In this document: positions 11,920 to 64,000 of the stretch, in pieces
How positions within the stretch are numbered: the first letter of the stretch is position 1
Layout: the number at the start of each line of letters is the position of its first letter
NCBI GenBank assembly: GCA_965202585.1
Contig: OZ241827.1
Span: forward strand, 21,576,001-21,640,000
Origin: Thalia democratica
Taxonomy: Eukaryota
Direction: 5' to 3'
DNA: 64,000 bases
The notes under the pieces: model-generated
The model's database searches: none
The model's input: only the letters and a program-made list of their open reading frames with translations
Told to the model about the DNA's origin: nothing
Program-made: the position numbers and the translations under genes

Positions 11920-11960
11920 ATTCAGAGTAATTAATCTTGGCTGCTTGTCACTTACGACTA
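11920..11960. promoter_or_regulatory. Candidate conserved TAAT + TGTCA element
   Basis: gtaattaatcttggctgcttgtcacttac. Inverted homologues at about 41040, 26031 and 45656. Confidence 0.4.
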
Positions 11961-14360: not shown

Positions 14361-14843
14361 TACTTTATTTAAACACAGAATTGTGAAAGCAGTTCTTTGG
14401 TATTAGTTCTAAATGTTTAAATTTTTGCTTGTTTTTCATATAACACTAAGACTTGTTTCTATTTAATAATCTATTGTTTTCTTACCTTAGAAGTTTGTTT
14501 AACTTATACTTTTAGTTACAATAAATATTTTGTTTGTAAATGGTAAAATGTATATTGATGGTTAGAAAACAAATGTTTCATTTTAAAACCTTTAAACACT
14601 TTTAATTATAAGTAAGTAGTGATGAATTTAGAGCTTATGCTTTAACCTTCATATTTTTAATTTGCACTAAAAATTTTTTTTTTGACCTTTTTATCTGCTT
14701 TATTTTAACGTTTTGCCTTAAGAAAATTTACCTGTCATATTTTTTTTTTTCAAGCATTTTAATCGTGTAGAAAATTTTTCGGTTTCTTTTATTTTAACTG
14801 AATAAACAATGAATTAACAAAATTCAGATTTAAAACTCACGCA

Positions 14844-17800: not shown

Positions 17801-19504
17801 GCAATGCTGTTTTAGAAATCAGCGTTCATATCAATCTGTATCATTTTTTGTGTTTAATTTTGTATTAACTGGTTACAAAAATAGAGCAGAAATAATAATA
17901 CATATAAATGTCTAGTTACTTTCAAAAATTTAAAAAAATTGATTAAGAAAACAGTTTTGTGAAATAATATTAAATTAAAACCGATTTTGAACAATTTAAA
18001 ACAGCGTATAAACACTTAAGGTAACTTAATATTTTAAAATATTGATATTTTGTTACATCTGTTACGGTGGTTTATTGAACAAAACTATAGTGTAGTATTA
18101 GTTTTAAAACTTTAATAAATATTATACAGAAATAAAAAACAAGGTTTTCACTAAAACTTAAGCAATCAAAATTAACATAACAGTTTTATGCATAATATTT
18201 GAAAAAATTACATTATACCATTTATCAGTTATAACTAATTTAAACTTAAAAGAGCTTAAAGTTATCAATGTTTTAAGAACTGCTGAAAAAACTTAAATAC
18301 GCCAAATTTTCATCATTAAACTTGGAATAAAACAATATCTAGTAATTTAACTCAATTAATGTCAATAATTGTCACTATTTATTTGCATTTAATCGGAATT
18401 TATTTTTTTATACTTAGCTTGAAGAAAAAACTTAAAGTTATAGGAAACCAATAAAAAGTTGTTGTCTGATTTGAAAACTTATTAAAACTATTTTAAACTG
18501 TTTTTGTATAAAGCAGAAACAAATTTAATGAAAAGCTTTTGAATAAAGTAAACATCGTTAAAAACAATAAAAGATAATTACAATGCCGTATAAAGTAAAC
18601 TAATATGCTTTGGAAAGTTAATAAACACCTTGATACAGATTTTTTTAATTACATCTTAATTTTTCTTTAATGACAATATTATGATGGCTACAAAGGTTTT
18701 TATTGATTTGTCTTTTAAAAAACAAGTCACAGCTTTTTATGTTATGCATTTTCTTTCAAGTATAAGTGGATTTTGATAGTTTTAAAGTTTTGCTTAGTTT
18801 TGTAGTAAAACTTTAGCATCCAGTTTAAAAGAAAAATATTTCAGCGTAACACAGCGGATAGAGTTAGAAAAGAGCTTCCAGTTACAAAAGTATGTTGCCA
18901 AGAGGGAAAGATTAGGACTTGCTGAGCATCTTGGTCTTACTGATGCGCAGGTTTTAATTTATTTCCATAAAATGTAATTTAAATACTCTTCTTAGTTAAT
19001 GGTTACTAGTAATAATATTGTATATTTATACACATATAGAAGTTTTTATACTGTAAATAAAATCACAACAAAAGAACATACGCAGTTTTTCCATAAACTA
19101 AGAGTCTATTTTATTGTTCTAAATCTTAAACTATTTTTTTTTGAAACGTTTTTATTTATTAAAAAGCTAATGTGGTAATTTGAAAAAAAAAGTTAGAACT
19201 TTACGGTAAAACAAAAAAAACTAATTCCCTGATAAGTATTAAATCAACATTAAAGTAAGTTAACTTTTGTAAAATTGTTTAAATTTGTCTACCGATCAAA
19301 CAGTTTTAAATGTGTTTATACAACTAATTAATATCTCAGGTGAGAATTTGGTTTCAGAACAGACGAATGAAGTGGCGTCAGGAGCAAAGAATAATTTTCA
19401 GACACTCAGGAAAACCGTCGGGAACCATAAGACCTGAAAGCAATCTACACCTGAGACCTGAATTAATTTCAAGTACGCGAAATAGAAACCATGTCTTGTT
19501 CTAA
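14844..19504 (+). CDS. Hlx: Hlx (H2.0-like) homeobox transcription factor, copy A, intact, 415 aa
   Basis: Exons 14844-14957, 15198-15735, 15916-16035, 16936-17140, 18845-18950, 19340-19504 total 1248 nt with consistent phases. Homeodomain [58 protein letters not shown] has Hlx-type WSRxVF, QKYVxK and LGLTDAQV. eh1 motif FSIEAILG at 15285-15308. Confidence 0.9.
18318..18469 (+). promoter_or_regulatory. Conserved intron-4 element of the Hlx copies
   Basis: Two TGTCA words, an ATTTGCAT octamer and ggaaaccaataaaa. Homologues at 33944-34095 (-), 30409-30542, 50805-50940 and weakly at about 7520-7660. Confidence 0.45.
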
Positions 19505-32401: not shown

Positions 32402-35400
32402 TTAGAACAAGACACGGCTTCTATTTCGCATACTTGAAGTTAATTCAAGTCTCAGGTGTAGGTCGCTTTCAGGTCTTATGGTTCCCGACGGTTTTCCTGA
32501 GTGTCTGAAAATTATTCTTTGCTCCTGACGCCACTTCATTCGTCTGTTCTGAAACCAGATTCTCACCTGCGATATTAATTAGTTGTGAGCATTAAAAAAT
32601 TAAAAAATTAAAAAACATTCGACCAGTATATAAATCTAATCGTTTTTACAAAAACAAACTTTCTTTTGTTATTATTATACTGTTTATTGTGCAATATTGG
32701 ACTCAGACATCAAAAACTGAGCAACTCAAACAGGACACACAAGAAGAAAAATAAACTTATATTAATTTGTTTAATATAATAAGCAATGACTATAATAATA
32801 ATGAAGTAAATTGTTAGTCTGTTAAGGGGGAGGCGTAGGAAAATAAAAATATTTAATATTACGAATAGAAAAATGAAGGAATTAGTAGTTATTTTAGATG
32901 AGATAAATATCATAAAAAACTATTCGCTTATTTTTTTATATTACTTTTACTGGAAAGCTATTGAGTCTTACTGATATTTATACTGTTTAAATAAAATATT
33001 TTTAGTTTGAAGCTAAAATATTCCACCCTCTCACACGATACCACATCCTGTGGTAACTTGTTCCACATAGTCTTTGCTCTGAGCAAAAATTAACTTTGCC
33101 ACTGACTGTAGTTAAAACTATGTTTCAATATTATTTTTCTATCATTTATTCTTAACTGATATTATGTTTATTAAATATTATCTGATTTTTAGTTTTACTA
33201 GTTTCGCCGCAATGTTATAACTTTTTTTTTTGAAATAACCACATTTTCTTTTCAGAAAACAAAAAACGTTTCAAATAGAAAATAAGTTAACATATAGAAC
33301 AATAGTTTCTTAGTTTACAGAAAAACTGCGTATGATGTATTATTGTGACTTTATTTACTGTATCAAAACTTCTATATGTGTATGAACATACAACATTATT
33401 ACTAGTAATAATTAACTAAAAAGACTATTTTAATTATGTTACATTGTAGTAGAAATAAATTTAAACCTGTGCATCAGTAAGACCAAGATGCTCAGCAAGT
33501 CCTAATCTTTCCCTCTTGGCAACATACTTTTGAAACTGAAAGCTCTTTTCTAACTCTATCCGCTGTGTTACGCTGAAATATTTTTCTATTGAACTAAACA
33601 CTAATGTTTTACTATGAAATTAAGTAAAACTTTGAAACTATCAAAATCCACTTGTTTTTGATAGAAAATGCATAACATAAAAAGTTGTAACTTGTATTTT
33701 TTAAAAACAAATCAACAACAACCGTTGTAGCCATTATGTTGTTGCCAATAAAGAAAAATTAAGCTGTATTTGCAAACTTAACTGTATCAAATTGACTCAT
33801 TAATTTTCAAAAGCATATTAGTTTACTTCACACGGCATTGTAGTTTTCTTTTATTGGTTTTAACGATATTTACTTTATTTAAGAGCTTTTTATTTCATCT
33901 TTATATAAAATACAGTTTAAAATCGTTTCAAAAAGTTTTCAAATCAGTCGAAAACTTTTTATTGGTTTCCTATAACTTTAAGTTTTTTCTTCGATCTAAG
34001 TAGAAAACAATTAATCCCAATTAAATGCAAATAAATAGTGACAATTGTTGACATTAATTGAGTTAAATTGCCTGATATTGTTTTATTCCAAGTTTAATGA
34101 TGAAAATTTAGTGTATTTAAGTTTTTTAAACAATCCGTAAAACATTGATAGCTTTTAACCTCTTTTAAGTTTAAATTAATTTGAACCGATAAATGCTAAA
34201 ATTTCTTTTTTTTTAAGTAGTAAATAAAAAACTTTTGTTGTTAACTTTGATTCCTCAAAATTTATAAAAAGCTTGTTTTTTATTTACTGTATAACATTTA
34301 TTTAAACTTCGGAATTAGTAATACACTATACTTTACTTCAATAAACCGTTATAGGTGCAATAAAATATCAATAACTTAATAATATTTAGTATCCTTAAGT
34401 ATTTATACAATGCTTAAAATTGTTCAAAAGCCTTTCTAACTTATAACTATTTCACAAAACTGTTTTTCTAATCAAAATTTATAAATTATTATAAAATTAG
34501 TTAGACATTTTTATGTATTATTATTTAATCTTTTTTTAATAACAAGTTAACACAAAATTAAACAGAAAAAATAAGATAGGTATTTATAAAAGCTGATTTG
34601 TAAAACAGCATTGCGTAAGTTAAACAAACAGTTAAAAAATAAAATTCACTCATAACTACCAAGGACAAATTTTATAAAAAAATGTATATACATAATTATT
34701 TTCTTAAAACTTGTACAGCTGCAGCTTATATGAGTGTTTTACTCGGAACTACCAACTAAAACTATAAAACGTGCGTATGTCTTTTTTTGAAATAAAAGCA
34801 AGAAGCTGTAACACTTGTACTCAGAAGTTTGAGTAAAAGCTTCTTTCATGGCTTGATTTTATTTGTCATGTCTAACTAATATTACAGTATTATAAAGAGT
34901 AATATTTTCTTATTATACTTTGTTTCATTTTATTAAAGCATATGCTGCTATAGTAGTGAAACTGACTTTAAAATATAGAAAAAAAACCACAAACATCTGA
35001 TCTTATTACAAAAGTCAAGGGATTAACTAAAAAATACTTTAGAATAGTAAAGAACTAATAACAAACTAAATAGATCTTATAACAGTTTGGCTAAAAATAA
35101 GAAATATAGATGAAAACCTAAACTAATTACCCGAAATATATACGATATCACATGGATTTGGGTTACACCTACAAACTTTAACTTTAAAAAAAACTTATGA
35201 AAAGTTATATAAGTAGAAAAATACTCAATGCTTCATTTTCTTATGAACAATTGTATAATTATTTAAATGTTTTTTACTTTAAAACGGTTCTGCTCCATTT
35301 TCTGCGTTTCTTATTGGACGATCTTGGCAAATCTTGCGAAGTTGAGGACACCTCCGCACTGCTCAGCCCTGACAACCGGTTACCATGGTGATACGGGGGA

Positions 35401-37580
35401 GAGGAAACTTTACAGGTCATCCGGTGTAGGTTTGAATTTCGTCGAACGATCTGAGGTGAAGCGAAATTTTTAAGTTGAGGCTCTGTAGACATTTATATTA
35501 CTTTTTATACATCTGTGAAGTGAATATTTGCAAAAATTACAAATAGGTTATGACGGTTTAAATTATTATGACATGACCTTAATAAACTATTTGATTTAAG
35601 ATTATAGAATTAGTAAAATAATATTAGAATTTTTTATTGTTAAAAACATGTTTAGGAAATAAAGCTAAAATTCCAACAATTTTAATTATGGCTTCATTAA
35701 TTAATCTATATCTCAAAACAATTATGAATCGAGAAAATAATTAATCTTTTTTTTTTAAAGGCAAATAGTTAGCTTTTCACATTATTTAAAATTATTTAAT
35801 TGTTTTTTTTTTTGTCTAAACAAAATGCTTTTAAACCTTTAAATGTTTACATTTATTTTATAAAACTAGAAATGAGTAAGCTTAACAAGCTTTAAAACAG
35901 ATTTTAATTGTTAATTCTTAAAACATCCGGTGTCAATCACTTAAATGACTTATAGTTGACGAGTTTTTAAATTCTTATCTTTTTAAACTTTATTTGCCTT
36001 TTTTGAATGAATATATTTTATGAACTTTATATATACCGGAATTTTACAGTACTATCCGAATATAAAAACAAAAAAATTTTATATTTAAAAAAAATGAAAT
36101 ACCCGTTTTTTGACAAGTTTTCAATTTATTTACGCACTTTTTCAACTACTTGAGAAATTGGTTGAATAAAATGAACAAGTTCTTTGAATAAAAATTCAAA
36201 TTTAAACTGAATCAACACAAATCACGATATTTATAAGCTTAGTTTGGCCATTGAGTTTTAGAAAGTAAGATAACTTCATATTTTAAAAGCTATTCATTAA
36301 ATGTAGAAACTGTTCAAATAAAAAAAAATGTAAGTTATACAAAATATTTTAACTGAATCATCACAACTCACGATACTTCGAAGTAAAACTTTGCCAAGCT
36401 CGTAAATGGTTTTGAAGCTGACAGTTGCTTGATTGGTTTAAAATTGACCAATAGCGTTTCTGCAAATCACTTTGAGTCGGCAACGCTGGGTCTACAGTTT
36501 GTTAAGTAAAATTTAATGATTAAGATTTTTTTTTCAAAATATCATTTTGTTCTTTGTAAAACATAACCACGTTAATAGTATAAGTCAAAAGATAAAAAAA
36601 TAATTTAATAGTATAAACAAAAACAAAATTGTGAAATATTTTATGAAAAAAAAAATAAATAAAACTAAATTATTGTTTTAACTGTAACACAAGCTAAAAA
36701 TGTTAAAACTTTACTTACAATTTCCGAAAATTTTCTGCAAATTTCTACCGGCCAAACCTTTCAAATTCATGTCCATCAAGCTCTTACGGTGAGCTTCCAT
36801 GGAAGCGATCTGGTTGTAAAGTTTGTTCTGAAACGCGGCCGCCTCTTCTATGTGAGACCTCAGTTCGCTATTATTCGAGTGACTTTTGATGCTCGCATCA
36901 GACGACTGAGAATCCACAGACATCCTGAGCTTCGACGGGTTCCTGATCTCAGGATTAAAAGATATCGTTGGCATTCTTTCTACTTCTGTTTGAAAATACG
37001 AGTAGCTCTTATCCGTGTTTTGGAAAGTCGTCGCTTTTTCTACGGTTTTCTTTTCTTGGTTTCTTTCGCTACCGAGACGCTATCCTTTTGGTACACAGTC
37101 TCAGTCGGGAAAAAGTTGGTCTTCAACGCAAATGGCTTAATGCCCAAAATGGCTTCTATTCTGAAGCTGTTTTTGTTGCTGTTGGCTTTCGGTGCGACGT
37201 TTGTGTGAGTTTCTTTTGTGTCCAACAGGCCGGTTGGTAACATGTTTTGACCTACACAATTTGTTATGGTAGAAATTGTATAAGGTATTTTAACTAAAAT
37301 GTAATACAAATCCTTATTGTAACAGTTTTCCTGGACTTAGCAAGAAAGGTTTGAAACTTAAATGGTTATTTTAAAAGTGATTTAAATTTAGTGAAACATT
37401 AATTGTTAAAACATTTCTAAGACACAAAATAAAAACGAGCATTTAAAGTTATGGTGGTCAATTTACCTGGTTGGCGAACATTGCTGACTTGTACTTTTTG
37501 TTGAACTCAAGCATGTGCTTGTAAAAATTCGGGTCGATCATACTGCTTGTATTGTAATGATTAATCTTTGACTTGTTCAT
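32402..37580 (-). CDS. Hlx: Hlx-like homeobox copy B; two 1-bp deletions in exon 2 as assembled (young pseudogene or sequencing error)
   Basis: Exons 37580-37467, 37251-36719, 36491-36372, 35482-35278, 33572-33467, 32566-32402 mirror copy A. Exon 2 is 533 nt vs 538 nt in A: A5>A4 at about 37247, C3>C2 at about 37044, plus an in-frame 3-nt deletion. Confidence 0.8.
32990..33130 (-). mobile_element. CR1/L2-clade LINE ORF2 C-terminal relic in intron 5 of copy B
   Basis: Minus strand reads ...FLLRAKTMWNKLPQDVVSCERVEYFSFKL, resembling the WNxLPxxVV motif at the end of CR1/L2 ORF2. This intron is 900 nt in B vs 389 nt in A. Confidence 0.55.
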
Positions 37581-40500
37581 TGCATGAGTTTTAAATCTGC
37601 GTTTTGTTATTCGTTGTTTGATCAGTTAAAATAATATAAAAGAAAAACTAATTAGTTAACTAGAAAAGCTCAAGGCGTGTATAAAATTTTTAGAGTATAA
37701 CAGGACGATTAAAAAAATATATTAATTTAAAGCAAAGGGTAAAACTTATCTATAAAACCATCTAGTGCAAAATAAACTTATATGGATTTAAGCATAAGCT
37801 CTTTAAGCATAGCTGTTTATAATAAAAAGTGTTTATATGTTCTTAATAAAATACATGTTTTAGAAACATCGATGCATCTGTTAGTATCGTTTACCATTTT
37901 TAAACAAAACGTCGCTTGTAACAAAAAACATAAGGTAAACAAACTTAATGCAAAACGTTAAAATAAAGCAGATAAAAAAGGTCAAAAAAAAAATTTTTAG
38001 TGCAAATCAAAATTATGAAGGTTAAAGCATAAGCTCTAAAATCATCACTTCTTATAATTAAAAGTGTTTAAAGGTTTTAAAATAAAATTTTTGCTTTCAA
38101 CCATCAATATATATGTTTATACATTTTACCATTTACAAACAAAATATTTATTGTAACTAAAAGTATAAGTTAAACAAACTTCTAAGGTAAGAAAACAATA
38201 GATTATTAAATAGAAACAAGTCTTAGTGTTATATGAAAAACAAGCAAAAATTTAAACATTTAGAACTAATACTAAAAAACTGCGTTCACAACTTTGTGTT
38301 TTAATAAATTACTTCGGAAACACCGGTATTGACTGCGTTCACGAATATCTAGAAGCAAAAAACACAAACATGACTCAATTAATGTTTATCTGCAGTAATA
38401 TTGAGAATGCAAAACAAAAGTTAACTGTTTATCTGGTGATATCACTAACTCGTTTTTATAAGATTTCTTGTCAATAAGTAAAACAAAAACTTAAAGTTTA
38501 TGCAACACAAACTATCTTTTTAAAGATGGTCTTACGCGAGACTAACTACTAATTTGTTTTAATTAACTTTTATTTACAAATGTTTAAGATTTAACCAACT
38601 TTAGACAAAAGTGTTTTTTTTTTAATAAATTTTTAAATTGTTTTGAATTTATTTTTAATGGTTTTATATGTACTAAGTAAGCTTTTTTATGAGTTAAAAT
38701 TGATTATATCAAATAATTTTTAAAATTAACAAATCTATTGACTCTATAAGTAAACTCTCTTTGATTAAAAATTCGAGCTGTTATTTTTTCCGTTTAGAAA
38801 AAAAAACGACATTTTTTAACTAAACTTTTAAAATCTACAACTGATTTAAATAACATTGATACTTTTGTAAACAAAATAAAATCTGCTTTAGGTTTGAAAA
38901 AATTAAATATAAATTAAAGTGTTGCTCAATAACATATATAACCAATCATTATCATTCACTCGCTTTTATTCGATTTATTTTGACAGCATTTTACTGTTAA
39001 GCAGTTATAGATCAAAGTTTTTTTTTTTTTTGCTGTTCATATTGTTTCTCTTAAACAAATATTCAAAGAAAAAAAAAACATTTTTATCGTAAAACAAAAA
39101 CTAAATAAAAACTCTATAAAATTACTTTATTTAAAGTCGTTCAGAAAAAAAAACTCCAGCTTTAAATTGTTTTTGTTTTTTACCATACTGCTTATATTTA
39201 ATCAAATAAAAAACTTAAGAATAATCTCATTTTTAATTAACAGTCTTTTCTTGTTTCATAATCGCATTTTTTTTGCATCTTGTTATTTATTTAAAACATT
39301 TAATCAAATAAGTTCAGCTAATTGAGAAAGCAAATTTTATTCTGTTTGATTCATTACTTTAACTTAACTTCCATTTTCAAAAAAAACAAATAAAAGGGGA
39401 GAAAATAATTCAGTAAATGTTTATTCGAACTTGCATCAAGTTTTCGAGAAAATAATTTGTCACTTCTGAGTACAATAAAATCAAACATTTGTTTCCTGCA
39501 ACGGCCTTGTTGCTTAGCAACAAAACGTTGACACTTGCTACTTTTCAAGCTGCGATGATTAATTGAAATCTAATCTACCGCAATGTAAAAAATTAACAAC
39601 AAGCTTTAATACGATTTCAAACTTCTTTTGCAATGAAGACTAATTTTTAAGTACTAAAAAATCAGCTCTGTTTAGAGTGTTGAGCTTTTTTTTACTTCCG
39701 TCCTTTTATAGTTTAATACAATCGAACAACTTACAATTCAATCCCTTATGTACATTGTTCTAATTTCGATTTATCATCAGCGCGTTTGAATGGCTTCGCA
39801 GAATATGTCAGTTCAAACTGAATCACAAATTTGTTCTTAAGCATTTAAATCATCGTGTGTGTATACAACATTTGTTAAATCAAAACTTATTTTCAATACT
39901 AAGAAAAATGTTATTGATCTTTTTAACTATTAAAGATTTCTTTTTGTTTATTTTTAAAATCAATATGATTAAACTAAAAAATAAATACTAAAAGTTAGGA
40001 TCTATGTTGTTTTTTTATTTTTTAACGAAAATAGTTATTATTATGATAAAAATGTAAAAAAATCACCTAATTGTCTTCAGAATAGCATCGAATTACAAAC
40101 ATAATGATCAACTGCATCTTATAAGTATTTCTTGATTAAAATTTCCACAATAATTAAAAATATATATAGTTCAAATTACAAAAAGTTAAAAAAGCTCTTT
40201 TTGCTTATACTTTTAAACTAACAATCAAATTTACAAGTTTAGTTTTGTTTCAGTTTATAAAAGGGAAAGCTGCAAAAAATCTGTCGCAATTTAATATAAG
40301 CTCACAAAAAACATAAGACTGAAAAAACGATTTAAAGTTAAACATTATAAATATTTAAAGTATACTTTTTAATTAGTGTATTTCAATAACTGGATATTTA
40401 GGTTATCAAAACTATTTCAAAAAGCTATTCTTTTTTTTATGTTAAAGTCATTATAAACTTCTATTCAAAAAACTCTTTATCTTATTAAAGTTTCAAATTT

Positions 40501-43500
40501 TTTTAAACTTTATATAAAAGTCTAGTTTGACGTAATAAAAATTTTAGCTTTACTTAACTTTAAATTTAATAATTAGTATATCATATTTATGAAAAAAACT
40601 ACTAAACATTGAAGTATAAAATTAAAGGTACAAATTTCAGTCCGTTTAGTTTAGGGTATATTTTTTATTGTGTTTATTAAGTACATAAAGAGTATAAAAT
40701 TACAATTAACAATAAGTAAGTTTTAAGCGTATTATAGTGTATGTTTACATAATTAATTTAAAACTAAGTTTGTTATTATAAAGTAGTTTAAAATTTAGCT
40801 ACATAAAATAATTTACATTGAAAAATCTTAACGTAAAATTTTTATAATTTAGGCAGTTTGTAGATTACTAGGTTTTTGTGTATTGCTTTAAAACTCTAAA
40901 AACTTATCGTTTTATTAAACTAATTAAAAACGTAAAAGGACATAAATGCTAACTTATGCACAAACTGCTTTACTTAGTAATCAATACGAAAAACATCTAT
41001 TAGAAACCATAAATTGCAAAAATTGAATTAACTGTAGTCGTAAGTGACAAGCAACCAAGATTAATTACTCTGAATGAACAGAACTCAACATCAAGTTAAA
41101 CTTTGTTTAACAATTTTTCTAACTCTAGTTGCTTAAACGTTACCTTTTCATCTTAAAGTAGTTACCTGTTTATATTAAGCCATAGAATTAAATTATTGAT
41201 GTGAAAAATATTTGTTTTTTTTTCAGTTTTCAAAATTATAAGATTATAGATATACTCTGTTAAGTTTATTTAATAATCCTTAACTGGTTGCTTTACTAGT
41301 TGTTTAAAAGCTTATTTTATTTGGTAAAACTATTAAAAAACACTTTAACTATATTTATCTTAAGTAGGATGTTGGGTAATAACTGTTTAACGATATTGTA
41401 CTTCGTTCTGACTAGCAATAGCCACACATTTTTTGCAAACACTTTCAACTGTATTATGTTACAAGCCTATGGCAATTGGCATACTTCCTACAGATTTCGA
41501 CACAACTTATTTGAACTAGTTCATTTTTCTACCTATTCAAAAAAAAAAGCTGCTGTCACAACTATTGTTTTTACAAACAATAAAGCAAATATAGCACAAT
41601 CACACAATTTATACTCTGTTTTCAGCGGCAACACGTTTATTGGTGACATGTGATTTATGCAACAATGAAAAATTTGCATTTATTTTAGCTTTTAACAATA
41701 CTGTGCAGTTTGTAAGCTTTTGTTTAAAACTAGCATTTCTTACAACTTCTTTGAAAATCTAACAAAATTTAAGTAACTAAATCATGGAGTAGTTTTAGTA
41801 TATTTTTAAAATTTATGAAGTTTTAGGAACATCAAAATGTTTTGTTATAAAATGAGAAGTTTAAAAAAAAAATTTTAAGTACTTTTGTGTAAAGTTAATG
41901 CTTTTTAGTTTTAAAACACTAGTTGTTGGTAAAAAATACATTGTAGTTATAACTAAAAATATGTTTAATGTGCAAAATATTTAAAAATAAAAACTTAAAA
42001 TTAGCAATGAAAAGTATTAGGTTAAATACTGAGTCTTAGTTGCTGATTAAAATTATGCTTCTTTTTCAATGTAGTACACATAAATTGTTTTATTATTTTT
42101 GAAATCTTAAAGCAATGAAGTACCTTATACTAAAAGTACTTAAGCAAGCATTTGTATTGGTAAATAAAATAAATGAAAAGTCCATAAGTGTGCAAAAGTG
42201 ACTAAAAACTTAGCTTTTAGTCACTAATCCAGCTAATTAAAATAAAAGAAACAAATAGTGCTAACAAGTAAAAATAAACACTAAAATTTCAATAAAAAAT
42301 TATAACAACACCAAAATATTAATAAAAGTTTTATGAGTTTCGATACAAACATAATACTTTGAACAAGCCAACAATTTCGGAAACAACGGTTTTGAATGCT
42401 TTTACGAATATATAGAAGCAAAAAACAAACATGACTAAATAAATTTTTATTTAAATTTAAACAAAAAACTTATTTATACACTGTTAAAAAACTGTATATA
42501 TAAAACTTTGTTTGAATAAGCTAAAAACTGAATATATTTATTGCTCTTTTTAGTGAAGTATTTAAATAAACTTTTCAGATGTATTCACTGTTATATTTGT
42601 AAATAAATGTTTTACCCGTTATTTGTGTCACAAAACAATTTTGTTTAGCATCCCATAATATTATTTATTTCATTTTATTTAAGTATTTTAGTCATTTAAG
42701 ATACTAATTTTATAAAATAACTAAATATTAACAACATACAAATCTAATGACTATAAGTATTATTGTATTAAAGTATAGTTCTACTTACTCGTTGTTCTTA
42801 ATTACTTCTTTATACCAAAAAGTTCTTTAATGAAGCTTTTGTTATTTCTTCTGAAAAAAAATAAAAGTTTTAGCTTATTTCATTCAGAATAATATACTTG
42901 AAACTAAAATACCTACAAAAATAACCTTAAATTTAATGACAATTATGTTTCTTAAAATTTATTAAGTTTTGTGAACTAAAAAAAAAAATTTATAAGCTTG
43001 AAGCAGAGGCTGTCGATTTTAAAACATTATTAATCTTGTTTAGAAAATATATTCGCAAATTGATTGAAAAATTGGAAAAACCAGATGTAAATAAAAAAGT
43101 CTAACACAATTATTACTGAATATTATTCAGTCGCGCGCTTTAATTTATTTTAACTGTGTTTTTATTGATTTAAACAATATAGTTTATCAAACCATAGAGT
43201 AAGCTTTGATTTTTATACATTATTGTTCTACTAAACTTAAAAATAACTTTAGAATATTTATTTTACAATAAAAAAGTATATATACTTCTTAATAAAAACT
43301 TTAGTTAAATTTTTTTATGATAAACTAATCTAGTAGTTCTATTTCAATCAAAAAATTATTTCATAATTTTCAACTTTAGCACTAAATTAAATTTAACTTT
43401 TTAAAAAGTTTTATTATATAACATGCTCCTTAAGTACTAAAATTTGAATTCAAAATCAAAACTTAATCTTGATTTTTCCGTGAATATAATCTGTCATTTT

Positions 43501-53427: not shown

Positions 53428-56400
53428 CTAATCATTCAACCATTCGACTAGTATTGGTTTGAAGTCAAAAACGTCTGGTTGTCCCTCGTGCTTGTCCGGG
53501 GCGTTTTTGTGGTCGGACCATTTGAAAGGTGGCACCTGGTCGTGTGTTGGTCCGCACTCGGCAACCATGCTTAAGTTACTGAAGAAAAATTATTATGATT
53601 AAAAAGTTTTGTTTTTGTTACTAACGCTTAGAACAAAAAATATCAGGCTATGATTTACCATTAGCTCAACTAAATAAAACATTACAAAAGAAAACAATGT
53701 AAACTCTTTTTTGAATTTTATGTTTGTTTTTTTAGTCTGCTCGGCTAAAACTTTTGAATACTACAGGTCACCAGAGTACGACAATCACTAAAGTAGTTTT
53801 TTAATTTTCTTTAATTTTTAGTCTGATTATACAGCTATTATTACTATTTTAATCTTATAGTCCTAATTCTTTAGTTTTAATCCTAGGCTCTAAAATAATA
53901 AAATGTTTATTTATATATAGGCCATCAACCTTGTTTGAATTTCATACCAAAGCAATCTATATTACAGTCGGAAAGAAATATTTTTGCAGTTTTTTATATC
54001 TTTTTACGATTCGTAAAAATTAGTAGAATAAAAAAAAGTTTAAAGTTTATTTGAAGATTGTTTAAATTCTAGTTTTTATGTTTTTTTTTCTATTTGTACA
54101 CAATGAAATCACAATTTATTGTTGTTTTTTAGAACAACAACATGCTTAAAAATAGTTTTTTTTTTATTCCACTATACGACGTGGTAGTTTTTAAAGTTAT
54201 TAAACATTTACCTTTAACTTTTACCTAAATTAATCCTTTTAATCAAAGAACTTTCATTTATTTTAAGAACCAATTTTTTTACTTTAAAAAGTCTAAATTC
54301 TTCTTAGTGTTAGTTTTTCATCTCAATTATATTTATACCAATATATATATATTAAACTAGTACAGCAACTTTAGTTATTCTTATCAAACAAACTTGTGCA
54401 AGTAACTGGTCACTTTGGCGTCGGTGGCGCCGAAGAGCTGTGACGTCAGTCCTCCGTACACGTCATTCAAATCGTACCTGGAAGCGATCGCGTTGCTCGC
54501 CCAACCACCTTGCAGCGGATCGTCTTTGTAGTCGTTCTTTCTGCAAAAAAAAATGGAATGGTGTACAAAAATTCGATAATTTATCAATTTTTTAGCCTGT
54601 CAGTTAATAATTAATATGAATAAATTGATGATTTTTTTCAAAACGACCTCTAAATAACATTTTTCTTTAATTTTTTTTGGAGAACAACAATGGTAGAGTG
54701 TAGTATAAATACAATTTGTTTATACACCGATTACAGGATCAAAAAAAATTAAGCTTCAAAAGAACATTATATGCGATTGTTATACAAATAAAAACTATTG
54801 TTATAACTAAACTTATATTAGACTTAAAATTGTATTAAGTTCTCCTTTTAGTGAACTTTATTTTGTAAAGAAACATTTTTAAAAGCTAATTTTTGTTTTT
54901 GTAATGCTTTAAAGCGTTGTTAAATAACAAAGTAGTACCTAATTACACAGTTTTTTAAGTAGTTATTTAAGTAAATATAAAAGTTATTTACTAACCTACG
55001 GTTTTTGCTAACTAATTATTATTACTAACTAAATATTTTATTTTGTTTAGTTGCAATTAGTTAGGTCGTTCACAATGCTATACACTTGTATACAACGTTT
55101 TAAAAAAGACAAACAAAAACTAGATCGTTAGTTCTGTAAAAAACAATTGTACGTTTTATATTAAGTCTACTCATTAACATTGTTTTGAATAGTTCAGAAA
55201 GTATACACAGTACACATACTTAATATACATAAAAGCACTAAATATTACATTACCTCATTAGTTTGAACATTTTTCTAACATCTGTCACATTCGATTGGTA
55301 GTGAGCAAATATTTTAGCCCTTGGTTTTGAATCGTAGCTTGATTTACCGTTTTTATCCAAGAAACCTCCTTCGCGCTGTACTTTTTCAAAGTAGCTGTTT
55401 AAAATAAATGAAAACACACTTACAAACTATTTTCAGTGTATAATAAAAAACAAGTTACAAAATATTTATATAACAAAAATAAAGGTTAAGTTTAACTTCA
55501 ACTACTTTTTATAGCTTTTAAATAAAGTGAAGTACTAATAAAATCAACGACTTTAAAAATTTTTAGCTTGAAGTTTTAACAAAAACTTGTTTAATGAAAG
55601 GCAGAAACTTTGCACAATTTTAATGTTAGCAATTTAGCAGCTACAAAGTAAACAAAAATATTGAAGCTATGAATAAAATATATTTGAAAATAAAAATACT
55701 CACGGATAGTTGTAACTTGGAAAGTATTTTTTTTCAACAAGTCTGTCACTCATATCTTTATAATGTACAAGACCTCTGAAAGCATTAAAATAGTGCGTTT
55801 TGAATAGAATGTGTAACATAAAACCAAATAACAAACTGTCTTTAAACAACATTTGTGAATTGAATAATGAGCTTTACAAAACTTTAAATTAGCTTAATTG
55901 TCTTTATTTACGTAAAAGAGTGGCTTCTTCAAATAAAGCACAACTAGAAACTTATACATATGTATGAACTTTCAAAAGTAAGCTCACGGAATTTGCTCGA
56001 GAACGTACAGCAGTCCATCGTTGTAGGAAGGTTTCCTCCCAGGAACGAACTTATTGTAATCAATTACCATCCATTGGTTATTGTACCTAATTAACCAAGA
56101 ATTAGCTCATATATTCAAAAAAACATTAGAAATAAAAGTTAATCAAATAACAAAAAAATAATATATTTAGACTTAATTAATACACAGAGTGTTCTATGCG
56201 CGGGGCAATGTTTTTGATTTTCTCCTAATAGTAAAGCTCTCTGTGCAGACATAAATAACATTATATAAAATAGTTTCTAAGATATAAGTTAATCAAAAAC
56301 TGGATGAAAAAATTAAATCAAAATAAATAAAATTTCAAACGTCCCGCTGTTGTGCCGCCGAAACACTTGGCACCACTCGGATCCGCTGGACGCCATCCTG

Positions 56401-59400
56401 TTGGCAACCAGGTTCCTCACCCACTCCAACAACCTCCCCCTGGCCCCCACGAAACTCTTCGCCCTTTCGTCGTTCCTGTTTCCAATCGTGGTTTCCATGG
56501 TCACCTTCGGGTAACACGAGTTTTTGTTTACAGAAACTAAAGCTGGTTCTTAAAACTAGTGCCAAATGTTTAAGGAGTTTTGAAAAAGCAACAGTTCCAA
56601 CATGCAGTTATGTTACAAATGCTCGTTCTCACCAGACCGGACGACATGATGTACCAGTCGTTGGATGAAAACAAATACCCAGGCTCGCTGTTGTAAGCCA
56701 CTTTGTTCCCTGCGTACTCAGTACCTGTGAACGTGATTTTGTAAGTGATGCTACTCATACATAAAAATTCCATGCTAAAACTCTATACGCCTTTGTATTT
56801 TATCGTAAGTAATAGTTTTTTTATGCACAAAACAAACTACTAACCTTCCAGCTCGCTTAAAAACACTTTTTTTTATTAAGGAGAAACAAACCGTCGTGTT
56901 TGGTGAAATGAAAGTGGTACTTCTTCATGATCTTCAGCATGGTCGAGTAGGGCCGCCAGGTGGCGTGACCGACCAGTAAATCGGTGAAATCTGGCAGAAG
57001 CTTGACCAGGGCCGAGCACTCGAGTGGGTTGGTGGGGAGGGAGTTTTCTGAAGACCTCCTGAAATTTGCGGGGCTGACGGCGAACAGAATTTCTTTTACC
57101 TCGTGATCGCTCGAAAGCTGGCTGTGATTGGTTTAAATTGCTCTCACATTGGGTGTTTAGTAAAGTTTTAGTAAAATTTCTAAATTCTATTTAAATTATT
57201 TTACTGCTAAATGTTATAAATAAAACTTTGTTTGTTTGATTGATTTTTTATTAACATTTGTATCCACTTAACTAACTACTTTAACTTTTATCAATTTAAA
57301 TGGACCCGTTATCGCTTGAGAGTTGGTTGATGTAGATTTAAATTGCGTTGAGTATAAAAAATGTTAGCAGTTGCAGAAGAAACTATTTTTGTTTTAAAAT
57401 CAGATAAAATATTAACTTTGTTAAGTTTCTAAAGTGAAATCTCGTTTATTTTATTAACCTTTTAATAAAACTTGAGCCTAAAATAATTTAAGGCTTTTGC
57501 GTGCATAAAAGTTTATTAAAAACTATGATACAGGTTTTGATGTTTTTTTTTTGTTTGTTACAGGATTTGATTACAATATTTGTAATATAAGTTTTTTTGG
57601 AATTTATTAGTATTTTTATTAAGTGTTGTGAGAAAAAAAAATATAATGATACTGTAAAAACGTACTAAGTTGAAATATTTAATAAATCGTAACAGGTTAA
57701 TGTTTTAAACTTGTTCTACTATCTCAGAATATAAAGTAATACTTTTCAACACATGAGTATGAAAAACTATCGCATAATGGAGTGGAACTAAAATATCAAT
57801 AACAAAAAATTCAGAGCATTAAAAAAAGAGTTTAAATTTTAATTATTAATGATTGCTTATTAAACAGTATAAAGATAAGTATATATTTATGCAAATTAAT
57901 CATATTCAGTATTTTAAGTAATCGTCTATATTTTTTTTACTTTAGAAAGTTTTTTATAAAAAAGTATAAAAAAACTTATACACATAATAATATGTTTTTT
58001 TTGAAAGTATTTTAACTCTTACCTAAATCCAAGCATTAATAATAAGAGCGGAGTATACATCAATGTAAATTAATTACATTCTATATTTTAGGTAACCGTC
58101 TATTTTTTTTTTAATTTTGGAGTTTTACATGAAAAAGTACAAAAATGTTTCTACACACAATAACATGTAATTTTTGTGAAAACGTTTAGACTAATACCTA
58201 AATATTAAGCAATAATGAACAAAGCTGAGTATACATTAATGCAATATATAATCACATTCTATACTTTAGGTTTTTTTTCTTTTTAGATTTTCATGAAAAA
58301 GTATAAAAAGTTTTACACACACAAAACGACATATTACTTTTTTGAAAACACTTTAAACTATTTTTCTAAACTAAAGCATGTATGCAAAAAAAACAAACTT
58401 TAAGTAAATACATAGGTATAAAAGATGTTTTATTTGTGCTAAGTTTACTACGTTTTTTCTAGTATTGATTATTTAAAAGTGCTTCATTAGTATAAAAAAG
58501 TAGCTTTTAAAACGTGTTTGCAAAATTGTTAAGTAAATTTGTATTGAAGCAGTTTCATATAAAGAGCTTGTTCGCAGTTCAACAACTACAAGTAAAGATT
58601 CAGTTTTCTTGTTTAAAAGAAACATGATAGTAAATTGTTTAAACTTGTTTAAAGTCACTAAATGTGATTACAATATAAATTTGGTACTTATTTTTGTGGT
58701 TAAAAGTTGTTTCTTAACTTAGATTATATACTCTGTTGTGTTTTACTTCTAAACAATAAAGTAAATAAAGAACATAAAAATGAGTTATATTTTTTTGCGT
58801 AAAAACAAAAAATCAGATTATTAAGAAAAAACAACTCTGTTCTTCAAGTTACATAAAATTTTATATATAAAATTTGTTTTTGTTTGAAAACTCAATAACG
58901 TTTTTTAATCATCAGAATAAAAGTTACTAGTGTGGTAAAATTTTGTTTTCTCAAAGAACAATGAGTTTGAAGAAGTACAAGTAAGCATTTAACTTTGTTA
59001 TTTTTGAAAACTAAAAAAGTTTTTAAGTTTTTATGCAGAATTTTCTCATAGTTATTAGCTTTTATACGTTTAAAAGTGCTTAAAAAACAAAATAAAATTA
59101 CTTTGTCAGCTAAAATTATATTAAATGTGTTTTAAGCTAAATAAAGCATGATAATTTGTTTTACCTTTTACAAGAGTAACCAACAACCTAACAACCAACA
59201 GAAAAAAAAAATTGATTAGATTAAATTATTTTTAGATTAAATATTTTAAATACTAATAATAGGTTTTACTGGAAACGATAAGTTTATCGTTATTTGTAAT
59301 AATTAAAAAGGTAAGTTTTTTTAAAGTTTATATGAGTAATTAATTATGTCATAACTTTAAAAAATAAAAAATATACCACTTTTTATTTAATATAATTCCA

Positions 59401-61444
59401 GCAGGAAATTTCATATAAAATAAATAAAGTACTAAATGTTAGATAAATAAATAACTGTTTTATTTGTTTTAAAAACATTTCAATTAGGTATGTTAAAATT
59501 ATTTTGTTTCTAAATAAAAACGTTAAGAAAGAAGCATGTTAATGGAAAAACTTAATCATAATTACATTTTACATTGAAAAAGCAATATATAACAAAATTT
59601 ATTTTTATTTTTATAGAAATTAAATTTAAGTGTTGAGGTTTGTATACATTTATTTAATGTCAAAGTATGTTTAAAACATAATACATTACATGTCTTTTTC
59701 TTAAAAGTAAATCCTGATAAGTAAAAAGTGTTATAAATTCTTATATGAATTTTTTTATTTTTTAATGAAAAATAAGGCTGTATGTTTTATGGCAAGAGAT
59801 CATCTGTTTTTTAAATTACTAATCTGAAATATTAATTGTCATCTTTAACTTTTTTGATGAATCAAACAACAAAAAATACATTTGTTTTTATATAAACTTG
59901 TTGAATAAACTATCTGGCATAAGAATAAACTTACTTATCGTGATAAATAAGTTAACTATAAGAATTAAGCCATAGTATTTGTATCTGTAACTTGTCTTTA
60001 GCTAGTCACATCTTTTTTGTACATGTATCATTATAACTAAACGAATAAGAAGTTCGTGCATAAACTATATATTTAATTGTTAATGGTAGAAAACGATGAA
60101 AATTTCTAAATAGTTTCCTGTATTCCTTCAAAATTTACGAAACTCACAATAATCCGTACGGGTCAATCCGTAGGCTCAAGTCTATATTTTCCTTTCCATT
60201 GTAACCGTCTTCTAAACCTTGTAATTGTAACAATATGAGACGGACCTAGGTAGTTAAAAAAATTACACAGTTATGTTGATCGTAAAAAACCACAAGTAAA
60301 ATAATAATTTTTATGGGTATGCCCAGGGTCAAAAACTTATTATTTACTACTTAATATTATTATTTTTTAACTAATGTACTTGCTGCCAGTAGTCACTTTT
60401 TGGGTTTTGATCGATCATACTGTACATGTAGTCCAAGTTTTCTCTGAAAAACCTCTTGAGACGAGGGCAGTTTTTCGAAACTTTGGGACAGTGACCTGTG
60501 TTTTAGTTCCTTGTAAGTAATAATTTTTTATTCTTATACATAATTAAACAAGAATAACTTTTTAATTAACAATTTTTCAGCTTGTATGGCTGTTCCGGAA
60601 AACTACTTTTGTTTTGTTTAAAACGAAAAAATTGACAAGCTTTTAAAAAAACTCTTTAGGCTTTGTTTCATACACAAACTTTTAAATTTAGGTGTTTTTC
60701 AAAACATGTTTGTAAGTTTTTGAGTATCGTTAGAAATTAAAAGTTATCTGTTACATTTATTAAAGTATAGAAACCTGATTTTGAGTTTTCAATTTTTTGT
60801 TTTATCAGGTTTTTTGTTAGTATTCCTTCCGCGAAACCAGCGACATAGGCTTGCATTGAATTGTTGAATTTTGAATTTGTTTTAATGTCAATAAAGGAAA
60901 ACCTTTGTAAAGTATAATAGAAATTACTAAAGTATTAACATTTTTCATACTTACTTATAATGTCTTCAAAAATCTTTTTTTAATTAAAGTAATATTTGTT
61001 TTTACTCAAATTCGTAAAATTTTAAGTCCTTTAAACTTTTAATTTTTTATTTGACTTCTATATTATTTATTTAAGAAAACCAATTTTTGTAGTATTTGTA
61101 TGTGTTTTATAATTGTTATGAAGAAAACTGAGTTTAAATGCCAAAACTATAGTATATAAAATCATTTTCTGCATATTAAAAAATCTTCAAAAAAAAAAGT
61201 AATTTTTATTTAAAAAACTTAACAGGTTAATTAACAAAGCTAACCCATTTTCTTTTATACTGTTTTTAAATGCAGCTCTTAAAATATCAGTTTTGCCAAA
61301 ATTATCTGTCAGTTTTGTTGTTTTGAATTGAGTTATTTTGTTTTGATGCACATCATGTTTGAACAAATATGTAGTCCATTTTGCATTACTATAAACTATG
61401 GTAAAAATTGAAAAAAAAAGTACTAAACAAGTTAGTATATTCAT
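53428..61444 (-). CDS. PLBD2: Phospholipase B-like 2 (lysosomal Ntn-hydrolase precursor), 545 aa, 12 exons
   Basis: Exons 61444-61245, 60902-60775, 60495-60380, 60245-60148, 57121-56892, 56724-56633, 56504-56341, 56086-55988, 55775-55704, 55394-55254, 54540-54394, 53578-53428 total 1638 nt with consistent phases. Signal peptide, then family motifs YWQQVRLILLQLQGLEDGY, CSALVKLLP..DLLVGHATW, ETTIGN, NSGTYNNQWMVIDY, PRAKIF, NDY..DPL, AIASRYDLN, GPTHDQVPPFKWS. Confidence 0.93.
57900..58380. repeat. Degenerate tandem repeat, about 3 units of about 175 bp, in PLBD2 intron 4
   Basis: Recurring cattctata.tttaggt, catgaaaaagta.aaaa and gagtatacat.aatg motifs. Confidence 0.6.
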
Positions 61445-61817
61445 TCTGTTAATAAAACATTACAGTTTTTAGTTTATGCTTTTCTAAACGTTTTAAAACA
61501 ACATATGCAAGTTTAATCTTTTGTTTATTTATCGCTACTTTTATATTTTTATTTGATTGTAACAAATTAAACTTATGAAAATATAAACTGAAAAACTTTA
61601 AACGCGTTTTTTAAAAAAGAAACAAATAAAAATGTATTAAATTAGCATGTAGATAAGTTTTATTAAGTATAAAAAAAAGTTTAAAAAAGTTGAAGAAAAG
61701 AATAGGTTGACTCTCTTGAGGTAGCCACAATACAATATTTCAACAGCAACATTTGAGCATCATACGCGTATACTTAATGCTACACTATTAAGAAAGGCAC
61801 TTGAATATGAAAAAAGC

Positions 61818-62303
61818 AAGCTGACGACCTAGTCAGCTTAGGGATTTTACAGTGTAAAGCTGTAATGAAAAAATCCCTAGACGTCCTAGCGGGTAGACGT
61901 CGTCAAGGCGGGCTGTGTGTTTTTGCTGGCATACAGGTTATAGCTGGAGTCGACGTGGCCGTCGATTCGAGCTGGAGTCGCTAGACCGCAGTTAGGCGGT
62001 TATAGGTTGTATAGCAGACCTCATTGAATAAGTAGCTAGGGAAGGTAAAGCGAGAGCAAGGCAGGTACCGTCCTAAGCAAGCCGTTGAGCATGAAAGCCG
62101 CTCTCTCGCAAGGCGTAGCAGTATATGAACGAGCTGTGACATGATTCAGCCCAGTTGAAAGTACGTTTGAGTGCAAAAAGTAAAGCATTTCTAGAGGTGA
62201 AGGTTCGGACGGGGCGACTGAAGCAGAGTAGGCGAGATACCAGAAATTGCGAAGCACTCAAAATGTAACTTGTAAAAAAGCGGCATAATCTCATGGTCGC
62301 TTT
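61818..62303 (+). ncRNA. Candidate large structured RNA of unknown class
   Basis: At least nine stems tile the interval, several with G-U pairs that work only on the plus strand. Transcription is not demonstrated. Confidence 0.35.
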
Positions 62304-62442
62304 CAAAGTCAGAGGTCAGTTGAAGCGAAATGTTTTGGAAGGGAAGCAGGAGGCTCGAGAAAATATTTGTAAAAGAGCGGGAGGTCTGTTTTTTGGAAAA
62401 ATTGTTGAAAATGAATTTTTGGGTTTTGAGAAGGGTCGAGGG

Positions 62443-62558
62443 AATATAGGAAGAAAAGTTGGAAAAAAATTTGAGCAAAAAAGCCGTCCGAATTCGCCCG
62501 CGGGCGAATTCGGACGGCTTTTTTGCTCAAATTTTTTTCCAACTTTTCTTCCTATATT
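62443..62558. repeat. Perfect 116-bp palindrome with no spacer
   Basis: 62443-62500 is the exact reverse complement of 62501-62558, checked base by base; centre ...aattcgcccg|cgggcgaatt... Confidence 0.97.
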
Positions 62559-63178
62559 TTTTTCAAAGGTGTTCGACGAAAGTCGGACGCCTTTTTTTTT
62601 ACCCAAAAATTTTTTAGGCTACCTCAAGAGAGTCAGAGTTTTTGCCTAGTAATGATTTTTTTTCAGTTCCACTGATGTCATAAGTTTTGAACGTTGCTGC
62701 CGAAAGGTTAGCATCGTTTTTATTTTACAAGTTCTTAATAAAGGTTGTTAAGGTTTTTGAAATTACAAATTGTCAATAGCCATATTAGAAAAATTTATAT
62801 TACTTTCGATACTTATAATAAATAAATAAAAAACTTAAGAACATGTATATATATTACTTATGCTGATAAGATAACAAATCCAATTGTACAATCAAAAACA
62901 AATTAAATTCGTATCTGTGCCTACGAACAACTATGTCAAAAAGAAAATTAAAAGTGTTGTTTTATAACTAAAAAAAACTTTTTAAAGCTGACACTTAATA
63001 AAGCAAACAGTTTCATTCAACATTGATACTTTTTAATAGTACTTGTATGAAGTTTTCTATACAATAAATAAAATTTTAAGTAGCAGGTATTTTGATTAAT
63101 TTAGTTAAAAGTTTATAATTCATTTAAATTTTTCTTAAAAATAAAATATCAGAGTTTAGTTTGTTAAATAAAACGACA

Positions 63179-63783
63179 AAATCGATAAAACCTTTTGTGT
63201 AGTTTTGAAACAAATAGTTTAAGTAAACTTTCAAAATCAATTTATCTGATTAAATAATGTGATTTAGTTCATTTAACATAACGCATAATTAAAGTGTAGA
63301 TAGCATTTAATTATATATGTAACTAAACATAAATCGATAAAATCTTTTGTGTAGTTAAGAAACAAATAACTTATGTAAACTTTCAAAGTCGATTTATCTG
63401 ATTAAATAATGTGATTTAGTTCATTTAACATAACGCATATTTAAAGTGTAGATAGCATTTAATGATATATGTAACTAAACATAATCGATAAAACCTTTTG
63501 TGTAGTTAAGAAACAAATAACTTATGTAAACTTTCAAAGTCGATTTATCTGATTAAATAATGTGATTTAGTTCATTTAACATAACGCATATTTAAAAAAT
63601 AGATAGCATTTAATGATATATGTAACTAAACATAAATCGATAAAACCTTTTGTGTAGTTAAGAAACAAATAACTTATGTAAACTTTCAAAATCAATTTAT
63701 CTGATTAAATAATGTGATTTAGTTCATTTAACATAACGCATATTTAAAAAATAGATAGCATTTAATGGTATATGTAACTAAAC
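63179..63783. repeat. Tandem repeat, about 152 bp x 4
   Basis: atcgataaaa starts at 63181, 63333, 63484 and 63636; units are nearly identical. Confidence 0.92.
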
Positions 63784-64000
63784 AGATTTTGTTTGAAACA
63801 ACTGTCATAGTCAAGATCTGAATTAATGATTAATAAAGACACCTCATATTTTCTAGAATATGCGCAAAAACTTAGTAGAAACATTAAATAATTAATTAAA
63901 ATAATTACAAAACATTGATTACTCCCACAACTGATTTCTGAATACAATTTAGCTTCGTTTTCTTTTTGCATGTTTTATTTGTTTAATTTTCAAATTTTAA

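Follow-up and report, generated by a model that had tools for sequence, protein, structure and literature searches.

An unusual repeat, best explained as rDNA-derived, beside PLBD2 exon 1 in the genome of Thalia democratica

Introduction

Pieces of ribosomal DNA (rDNA) also occur outside the rDNA arrays, as rDNA orphons or as repeats derived from the intergenic spacer (IGS), and are tandemly amplified there. In the rRNA genes of mammals, the 'Sal box' sites of TTF-I are located both close to the promoter (T0) and downstream, at the terminators. Mobile elements make use of rDNA as well. The 28S gene contains a universally conserved site, which I-PpoI cuts in eukaryotes other than Thalia democratica. 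In its usual form the site includes the I-PpoI recognition sequence CTCTCTTAAGGTAGC (PMC3597653, PMC2602781). R2, which is known from tunicates, and its deletion derivatives (SIDEs) are structured and dependent on rDNA transcription signals (PMC13188248). Pokey, a piggyBac element of Daphnia that has also been reported from Ciona savignyi, targets a TTAA in the 28S gene that is 4 nt away from the R2 site. Part of its sequence is derived from the rDNA intergenic spacer, and the element also occurs outside rDNA (PMC3315735). The Cassandra TRIMs of plants are non-autonomous and have kept a promoter derived from an rRNA gene host-like (bioRxiv 10.1101/2023.07.14.548913).

Here we describe a repeat, the cassette, which is located in a 64-kb window of Thalia democratica DNA (C2:21576001-21640000 of the 802-Mb genome; the window is this whole stretch). 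It shares with R2 and the SIDEs their structured nature and the likeness to rDNA transcription signals, and it contains the same 28S site as a short tag, a 19-mer that these elements interrupt in this genome. Unlike R2, however, the cassette is not in the 28S gene, its site is uninterrupted, it contains no R2 UTR sequence and its location is chromosomal. Pokey has true terminal inverted repeats (TIRs), duplicates TTAA and encodes a transposase, whereas the cassette has no target site duplication (TSD) and does not end at its repeats, and a search for a piggyBac transposase gave no hit; Pokey also needs TTAA, while the 28S site in Thalia democratica reads TTGAGG, with TTGA in that place. Cassandra has a 5S (Pol III) internal promoter in its LTRs, PBS and PPT sequences and TSDs, in contrast to the 45S-type leader sequence of the cassette, which has neither long direct repeats nor a TSD. 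The body of the cassette, unlike orphons, is absent from the rDNA unit, and its 28S pieces are tags of 19-23 nt and not gene fragments. A short motif that is found just ahead of the start region and again next to the terminators may be likened to the T0 and terminator sites, although this motif copies mature 28S sequence, does not stand at these positions in real rDNA and has a downstream copy that is optional. The cassette thus appears to lack the defining features of each transposon family compared, and belongs only to the broad class of rDNA-derived dispersed repeats: it contains 28S copies and a leader block, and is located on C2 outside the rDNA arrays. Of the cassette's roughly 1.1 kb, no more than about 130 nt are recognisable as rDNA.

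Results

The inverted repeat and its surroundings

A perfect 19-bp inverted repeat is present at positions 61708-61726 and 62617-62635 of the window, with arms that are 100% complementary and 890 nt apart, just as stated in a preliminary description made from the sequence. With up to three mismatches allowed, the 19-mer has just these two sites in the 64-kb window, and none of 100 shuffled sequences contained any match. The preliminary description had also remarked on the lack of a TSD, and correctly so: no direct repeat of at least 4 bp is located beside the pair in any register up to 6 bp from either end, and a TSD is likewise absent at the 19-mers of the other cassette copies inspected. Between the repeats the GC content is 40-52%, against about 20% outside, and the only open reading frames are short, overlapping and on both strands, none of them credible. 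This agrees with the cargo of structured nucleic acid, and not of coding sequence, that had been proposed, as the interior is GC-rich and dense in hairpins. Exon 1 of PLBD2 (61187-61444, minus strand), an open reading frame containing the signal peptide, is a neighbour of the cassette and not a part of it; its ATG is 263 bp from the left 19-mer, close to the 260 bp estimated before.

The piece bounded by the 19-mers starts with TG, ends with CA and has a purine-rich flank on its left. A solo LTR or LTR retrotransposon was considered on account of these ends and the purine tract, but a TSD is missing, direct copies do not occur in pairs at a distance of a few kb, and the sequence on either side is conserved, so this candidate was rejected.

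The 28S tags and the resident R2

One rDNA unit was assembled from C26 as a reference for comparison. It contains the 3' part of a 28S gene, a spacer with U5, U2 and spliced-leader RNA genes and two 5S genes, and then 18S-5.8S-28S. The rDNA arrays have a period of about 15.1 kb, and the identity of the 28S was confirmed by the Rfam LSU model. The 19-mer is present exactly in this genome's own 28S, inside a conserved stretch of 31 nt that has 252 hits in rDNA. The left 19-mer (61708-61726, plus strand) is a sense copy that matches the host 28S exactly at the R2/I-PpoI site, and the right one (62617-62635, minus strand) is an antisense copy of the left; we refer to them as the left and right 28S tags. 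In the copies on chromosome 7 the match of the left tag to 28S extends to about 23 nt, and this tag is nearly invariant among 20 aligned copies. The perfection of the repeats had been read as the sign of a young insertion, but as the 19-mers are exact copies of host 28S sequence, it dates nothing.

The right tag is more variable in its arrangement. It is inverted in the copies on C2, C7 and C779, direct in that at C1:93 Mb, doubled head-to-head at C1:41.9 Mb, decayed at C2:92.58 Mb and absent at C6:65.8 Mb. The two 19-mers decay independently of each other, without co-variation. A genome-wide search with the 19-mer, with alignment of the flanks, showed homology passing through both of them, between copies on different chromosomes and in every subfamily. 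Given this homology and the variable right tag, the 19-mers are not transposon ends, and the view that they are the termini of an element has to be given up. Among 100 places listed of 806, no pair of plus- and minus-strand 19-mers was found 2-10 kb apart, as a longer copy would have shown.

The same 28S site is occupied by R2 in some rDNA units. One 28S copy contains a 4295-bp R2, inside the 19-mer, between rDNA positions 92 and 99 (coordinates of the analysis). This resident R2 is intact, with an open reading frame of 981 amino acids comprising a zinc finger and an RVT_1 domain. Two further, irregular rDNA units contain a 1.5-kb, internally deleted R2 derivative at the 28S site. Insertion of the cassette into some 28S genes was considered and rejected, all three of the interrupted 28S sites sampled being occupied by R2 or its derivative. 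A blastn comparison of the cassette with the derivative, which holds both R2 ends, gave no hit at an E-value of 1e-3, and R2 3' ends are found on rDNA contigs only, apart from one fragment. With no UTR similarity and with R2 3' ends in rDNA only, a role of the cassette as a parasite or landing pad of R2 was also rejected. The cassette copies themselves are located on chromosomes and carry the R2 site uninterrupted. What looks like a 19-bp TIR without a TSD in this genome is a tag of host 28S sequence and not the mark of a new transposon superfamily.

Extent of the cassette

On the right, about 190 bp of flank are common to all subfamilies, with 70-85% identity up to a shared break near 62823-62826. 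Copies on different chromosomes are homologous over 80-290 bp on the left and, on the right, over lengths that range from 190 bp to more than 1 kb. An AT-rich stretch at 61626-61707 (plus strand), 85% identical over 81 bp to the copies on chromosome 7 (9.4 Mb), is a remnant of the upstream part of the cassette, and other subfamilies have 130-290 bp in common with the stretch left of the left 19-mer. Complete members contain 157-190 bp more on the left, up to a GTGCGTAC...GTGCGTAC motif, which is found neither in the window nor in the following 30 kb. This upstream GTGCGTAC motif brought a promoter of the snRNA type into consideration; it is absent from the rDNA unit that holds the U2, U5, spliced-leader and 5S genes, and the candidate was rejected. 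Past the right tag, the cassette continues from 62636 to 62826 (plus strand), with homology in all subfamilies. This is followed by an AT-rich right part (62824-64000, plus strand), which includes a 152-bp tandem repeat (63024-63930) and is common to the chromosome 7 copies only; the homology to these continues beyond the window, to at least position 64374 in coordinates continued from it.

The complete members at C1:93.2 Mb and C2:92.58 Mb share homology over 2.35-2.7 kb, past which they are unrelated. Complete members are discrete units of 2.2-2.7 kb. Their left boundary reads T(A/T)AGTGCGTAC... and is located 157-190 bp before the left 19-mer; homology is lost at this same boundary in five independent groups of loci. 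The right boundary reads ...GCTAGATCATTGTATTT, with the right outer end also given as ...CATTGTATTT. No TSD, poly(A) tail or simple-repeat tail is present at the outer ends of the complete units. The copy in the window is cut short and lacks both outer ends.

The rDNA-like head and the terminator-like hairpins

The head of the cassette (61736-61825, plus strand) is homologous to the turn from AT-rich to GC-rich sequence in rDNA, about 530 bp upstream of 18S. In a blastn comparison it is 83% identical to rDNA over 58 nt (E-value 1e-11), and an nhmmer profile made from 20 cassette copies matches rDNA positions 9773-9874, over about 90-100 nt, with an E-value of 2.8e-14. The 22-nt core of the head block has 462 hits in the genome, about 252 of them in rDNA. 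The head corresponds to the rDNA promoter or 5'ETS-leader region, and could be a transcribed leader and not a promoter. A second collinear match of the cassette, into the ETS, was not significant, and neither was the likeness to rDNA of the AT-rich sequence upstream, which was reached by 72 of 500 shuffled sequences.

Towards the other end, a terminator-like hairpin with a GAAA tetraloop is followed by a run of nine T (62568-62600, plus strand). Its folding energy is -19.9 kcal/mol on the plus strand against -12.0 kcal/mol on the minus strand, and its stem contains two G.U pairs. Elsewhere this hairpin and T-run are present in tandem, in two to six copies with a period of 84-101 bp. In the continuation past the right tag, a second GAAA hairpin with T-run is located at 62690-62722, with -13.3 (plus) and -8.2 (minus) kcal/mol. 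These hairpins are of the same build as the signals that follow 28S in rDNA, where a GAAA-tetraloop hairpin with a run of nine T comes right after the 28S 3' end and is followed by three more units of hairpin and T-run; folding of the rDNA hairpin, at -27.3 against -15.4 kcal/mol, favours the rRNA-sense strand. The higher stability of the plus strand, in these terminator-like hairpins as well as in the best hairpin of the body, is due to G.U pairs. In the copies at C2:92.58 Mb, the stems of the terminator have changed in sequence while their pairing has been kept.

The body and the palindrome

The non-coding body (61797-62442, plus strand; GC content 40-52%) has a mean column identity of 86% over 20 copies and no counterpart in the sampled rDNA unit. 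Its most conserved block (61820-61847, plus strand) contains a 7-bp hairpin and the foot of the next helix. This 28-nt block is found 147 times in the genome when up to three mismatches are allowed, and 99 copies have it exactly, whereas whole copies differ by 10-19%; gene conversion instead of selection could account for its conservation. A 14-bp hairpin at 61944-61975 (-21.9 kcal/mol on the plus strand against -15.9 kcal/mol on the minus strand) keeps its pairing between copies: one pair occurs as U-A, C-G or U-G and others vary through wobble pairs, with no A.C. For the consensus Watson-Crick stems as a whole, a strand-neutral count gave 43 G.U against 33 A.C variant types and many mismatches, and covariation of a whole-body RNA, weak in this count, was rejected. 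Conserved structure is therefore put forward for individual hairpins only, and not for a fold of 800 nt. Searches with Rfam 15 led to sub-threshold matches to miRNA precursors only, driven by the palindrome, and to no family; no tRNA or tmRNA is present in the stretch, and scans of metagenomes with the conserved blocks gave no match.

The body is followed by a perfect palindrome of 116 bp without a spacer (62443-62558), with arms of 58 nt that evolve together. The two arms (49-60 nt) have zero to two mutual mismatches in 19 of the 20 diverged copies compared, while between copies the palindrome differs by several substitutions and by the lengths of its A and T runs, each mirrored in both arms. 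No G.U pairs are tolerated. This pattern of co-variation points to homogenisation at the DNA level, perhaps by mismatch correction in a hairpin or cruciform or by regeneration of one arm from the other; selection on the arms at the level of RNA is less likely.

Copy number, arrays and local duplication

The 928-bp piece from the left to the right 19-mer has at least 40 full-length copies with 81-100% identity (40 scored of 547 candidates), and the family comprises roughly 150-210 copies. The sequence is thus multi-copy and not a single-copy stretch with chance repeats, and its copies do not fall into any known superfamily that has a normal TSD. Most are present once per unit of large tandem arrays, on C1, C2, C4, C5, C6 and C7, with a spacing of 20-45 kb; about ten are single loci. 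In public contigs under two organism labels, sequence matching 61672-62673 has a word depth 10-70 times that of its flanks, which is only a rough sign of repetition. A 313-nt contig under the second organism label crosses the left junction with two differences, which places the cassette at the same site there. A contig joint that skips 61679-62817 was considered as an empty site and not trusted, as it rests on 21 letters of low complexity.

The stretch from 50026 to 65111 is repeated about 29 kb downstream with 94% identity; in the DNA fetched downstream of the window, 100 N were left unfilled. PLBD2 exon 1 adjoins the cassette only in three local copies and one unplaced contig. The downstream repeat, together with the restriction of the exon to the local copies, indicates a segmental duplication and not an insertion. 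The window copy was triplicated passively, with about 15 kb of surrounding DNA including PLBD2; an insertion of the element upstream of this gene, as previously suggested, does not account for the three local copies. The junction of the local duplication is 11.7 kb away from the cassette, which makes the cassette a passenger and not a breakpoint, at least at this locus.

Discussion

The best-supported account of this stretch is that it is an unusual rDNA-derived repeat and not a cut-and-paste transposon. With moderate confidence, we regard it as one shortened member of a family of non-coding cassettes that is spread through the genome, composed of rDNA parts and a body that has no counterpart in the sampled rDNA unit, and organised as a miniature transcription unit in the style of rDNA. 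Judging from its anatomy, the cassette would be read from left to right, probably by RNA polymerase I. The product would be a structured RNA of about 0.8-1 kb, ending at the signals made up of hairpins and T-runs, and the 28S tags may be internal sites for protein binding or RNA pairing that bracket the unit. Some duplicative process would have brought the family to 20-30 loci, where it was then presumably multiplied passively in the large tandem arrays. The use of Pol I, and whatever roles the RNA or the tags may have, are read from the sequence. Should the leader block be the start of transcription, the left tag would occupy the place expected for the core promoter, which counts against a unit of this kind.

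A wider proposal, which we consider improbable, is that the cassettes are dispersed genes in the style of rDNA with two possible roles, as short Pol I units for a conserved structured RNA and as recombination hot spots that seed and maintain the many 20-45 kb arrays. The parts of such a hot spot would be the leader, the terminators as possible fork barriers, the self-homogenising palindrome and the copies of the R2 nick site, and the arrays would expand in the manner of rDNA arrays.

Other origins of the family were weighed against the reading as a miniature rDNA-style unit. One of them is an inert rDNA orphon. This would be a rearranged, functionless remnant of a former spacer variant, with promoter region, spacer, terminators and bits of 28S, that left the rDNA and multiplied solely through segmental and tandem duplication. 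Such an orphon would readily account for the single copy per array unit, for flank homologies that are nested as if by successive segmental duplications, for local copies that are plainly passengers and for the weak overall covariation. It does not sit well with a cassette that is better conserved than its flanks, with a 28-nt block so often exact in otherwise diverged copies, with terminator stems that keep their pairing and plus-strand polarity through changes of sequence, with the loss of homology at one left boundary in five independent groups of loci, or with the absence of the body from the present rDNA unit; we judge it unlikely. A little less probable still is a non-autonomous retroposon with a borrowed rRNA-gene promoter, copied by a reverse transcriptase encoded elsewhere, by R2 or by LINEs. 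The head resembling the rDNA leader or promoter, the discrete unit of 2.2-2.7 kb and the existence of 5'-shortened copies (L008, L018 and L019) fit such an element, reverse transcriptases are abundant (4142 RVT_1 candidates), an intact R2 is present, and Cassandra, with its 5S promoter, provides a precedent in plants (bioRxiv 10.1101/2023.07.14.548913). However, the outer ends have no tail and no TSD, and the last 200 nt are found beside cassettes only, so there is no LINE with a common tail; R2 itself offers no similarity in its UTRs, none of the three interrupted 28S sites holds a cassette, and its 3' ends are, but for the one fragment, confined to rDNA contigs.

Two kinds of DNA element are much harder to reconcile with the data. 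The preliminary description had proposed an undescribed, non-autonomous element with TIRs. That the sequence is repeated, non-coding, rich in structure and devoid of a TSD, and that it fits no transposon superfamily tested, still stands, but the TIR ends do not. A non-autonomous cut-and-paste transposon ending at the 19-bp repeats is very improbable in our estimation: the repeats are perfect, the pile-up of contigs (at least 85% likeness) rises and falls within the bins that hold them, and Pokey demonstrates that DNA transposons associated with rDNA exist (PMC3315735), but homologous flanks lie outside both repeats in every subfamily, without a TSD, the right repeat changes its orientation or is missing altogether in some subfamilies, the two decay independently and consist of host 28S sequence, and no piggyBac transposase was found with the piggyBac DDE profile, in a search in which the RVT_1 positive control worked. 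We give even less credence to a rolling-circle element of the Helentron or Helitron2 type (HINE- or DINE-1-like) as the driver of the amplicons. Such elements would explain the missing TSD, the 5' sequence that recurs inverted near the 3' side with hairpins after it, the internal tandem repeats, the left flank that mostly ends in T and the copies in tandem arrays. Yet the 19-mer is no 5' end, being 157-190 bp inside the left boundary of the unit, its inverted copy is host 28S sequence and optional, and the junction of the local duplication array is 11.7 kb off the cassette. A Rep domain was not found in the 802 Mb, where the PF14214 profile gave one candidate and none passing, against the 4142 for RVT_1, and is likely to be absent.

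As a miniature rDNA-style unit, the cassette, if transcribed, would be a rare case in animals of promoter and terminator signals of rDNA being reused for a non-ribosomal, multi-copy, structured RNA, in a cassette that is marked with the exact 28S sequence attacked by rDNA-specific mobile elements. It also provides a testable handle on two questions: how short perfect palindromes stay perfect, and why the genome of a pelagic tunicate is full of large tandem arrays.

Cassette-bearing arrays and the PLBD2 amplicon

Array units that carry the cassette, the rDNA-derived non-coding repeat, are grouped in blocks of opposite orientation on two chromosomes. Between 92.58 and 94.01 Mb of chromosome 2 (G000:C2), about 10 forward units are followed by about 16 reverse and then about 6 forward units, while at 93.22-93.42 Mb of chromosome 1 (C1), five forward units are flanked on either side by a single reverse unit. 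These alternating blocks suggest that the amplification included palindromic steps.

The local amplicon around PLBD2, the gene neighbouring the cassette in the window, is complex. In the window and the next 30 kb (L061-L063), a segment of about 15 kb containing PLBD2 (50026-65111) recurs at +29 kb, with blocks that are 92-95% identical, and a 3.3-kb PLBD2 segment, 53714-57037, recurs in inverted orientation at 74256-77579 (window coordinates, continued beyond its end). Directly to the right of the cassette lies a 152-bp tandem repeat of about six units (63024-63930), also present in the chromosome 7 copies of the cassette. Elsewhere in the window, and not connected with the cassette, about 8 kb of sequence is duplicated in inverted orientation (11127-19263 versus 33152-41862, 84-86% identity).

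A second repeat family of at least 1.7 kb, unrelated to the cassette, was found at L001, L002, L006, L007, L009 and L022-L024 (for example G000:C1:3278554-3281572). Its members contain a 28S-like patch of about 32 nt, located about 210 bp ahead of the end that they share; the patch includes the exact 19-mer copied from the R2 site of the host 28S gene. Tags of this kind are therefore not exclusive to the cassette.

The rDNA unit and its 28S target site

L066 and L067 (G000:C26:25001-40200) cover the rDNA unit, which has a length of about 15,085 bp. Its spacer contains U2, U5, two 5S genes and a putative spliced-leader RNA gene, in which ATTCTATTTGAATAAG, the 16-nt spliced leader known from Ciona, is followed by GTAAGT; five small-RNA genes, one of them spliced-leader-like, are therefore carried by the rDNA repeat.

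Inserted within 28S (L069, G000:C37:123400-129600; L068, C26:53000-59000; L074, C386:22900-24400) are an apparently intact R2 of 4295 bp with a 981-aa ORF and internally deleted, non-coding 1.5-kb derivatives, with a target loss of 6 bp. The 5' part of the derivative contains tandem hairpins of about 40 nt, the loops of which, TAAGGTAGC or TAAGGTGGC, show the 28S target core in its canonical form.

The usual eukaryotic 28S sequence at this site is TTAAGG, and all 252 matched 28S copies (for example L064/L065 and L067) contain TTGAGG. The substitution removes TTAA and alters the I-PpoI core. TTAA is the site used by Pokey-type piggyBac elements (PMC3315735), and the change may be an adaptation against them.
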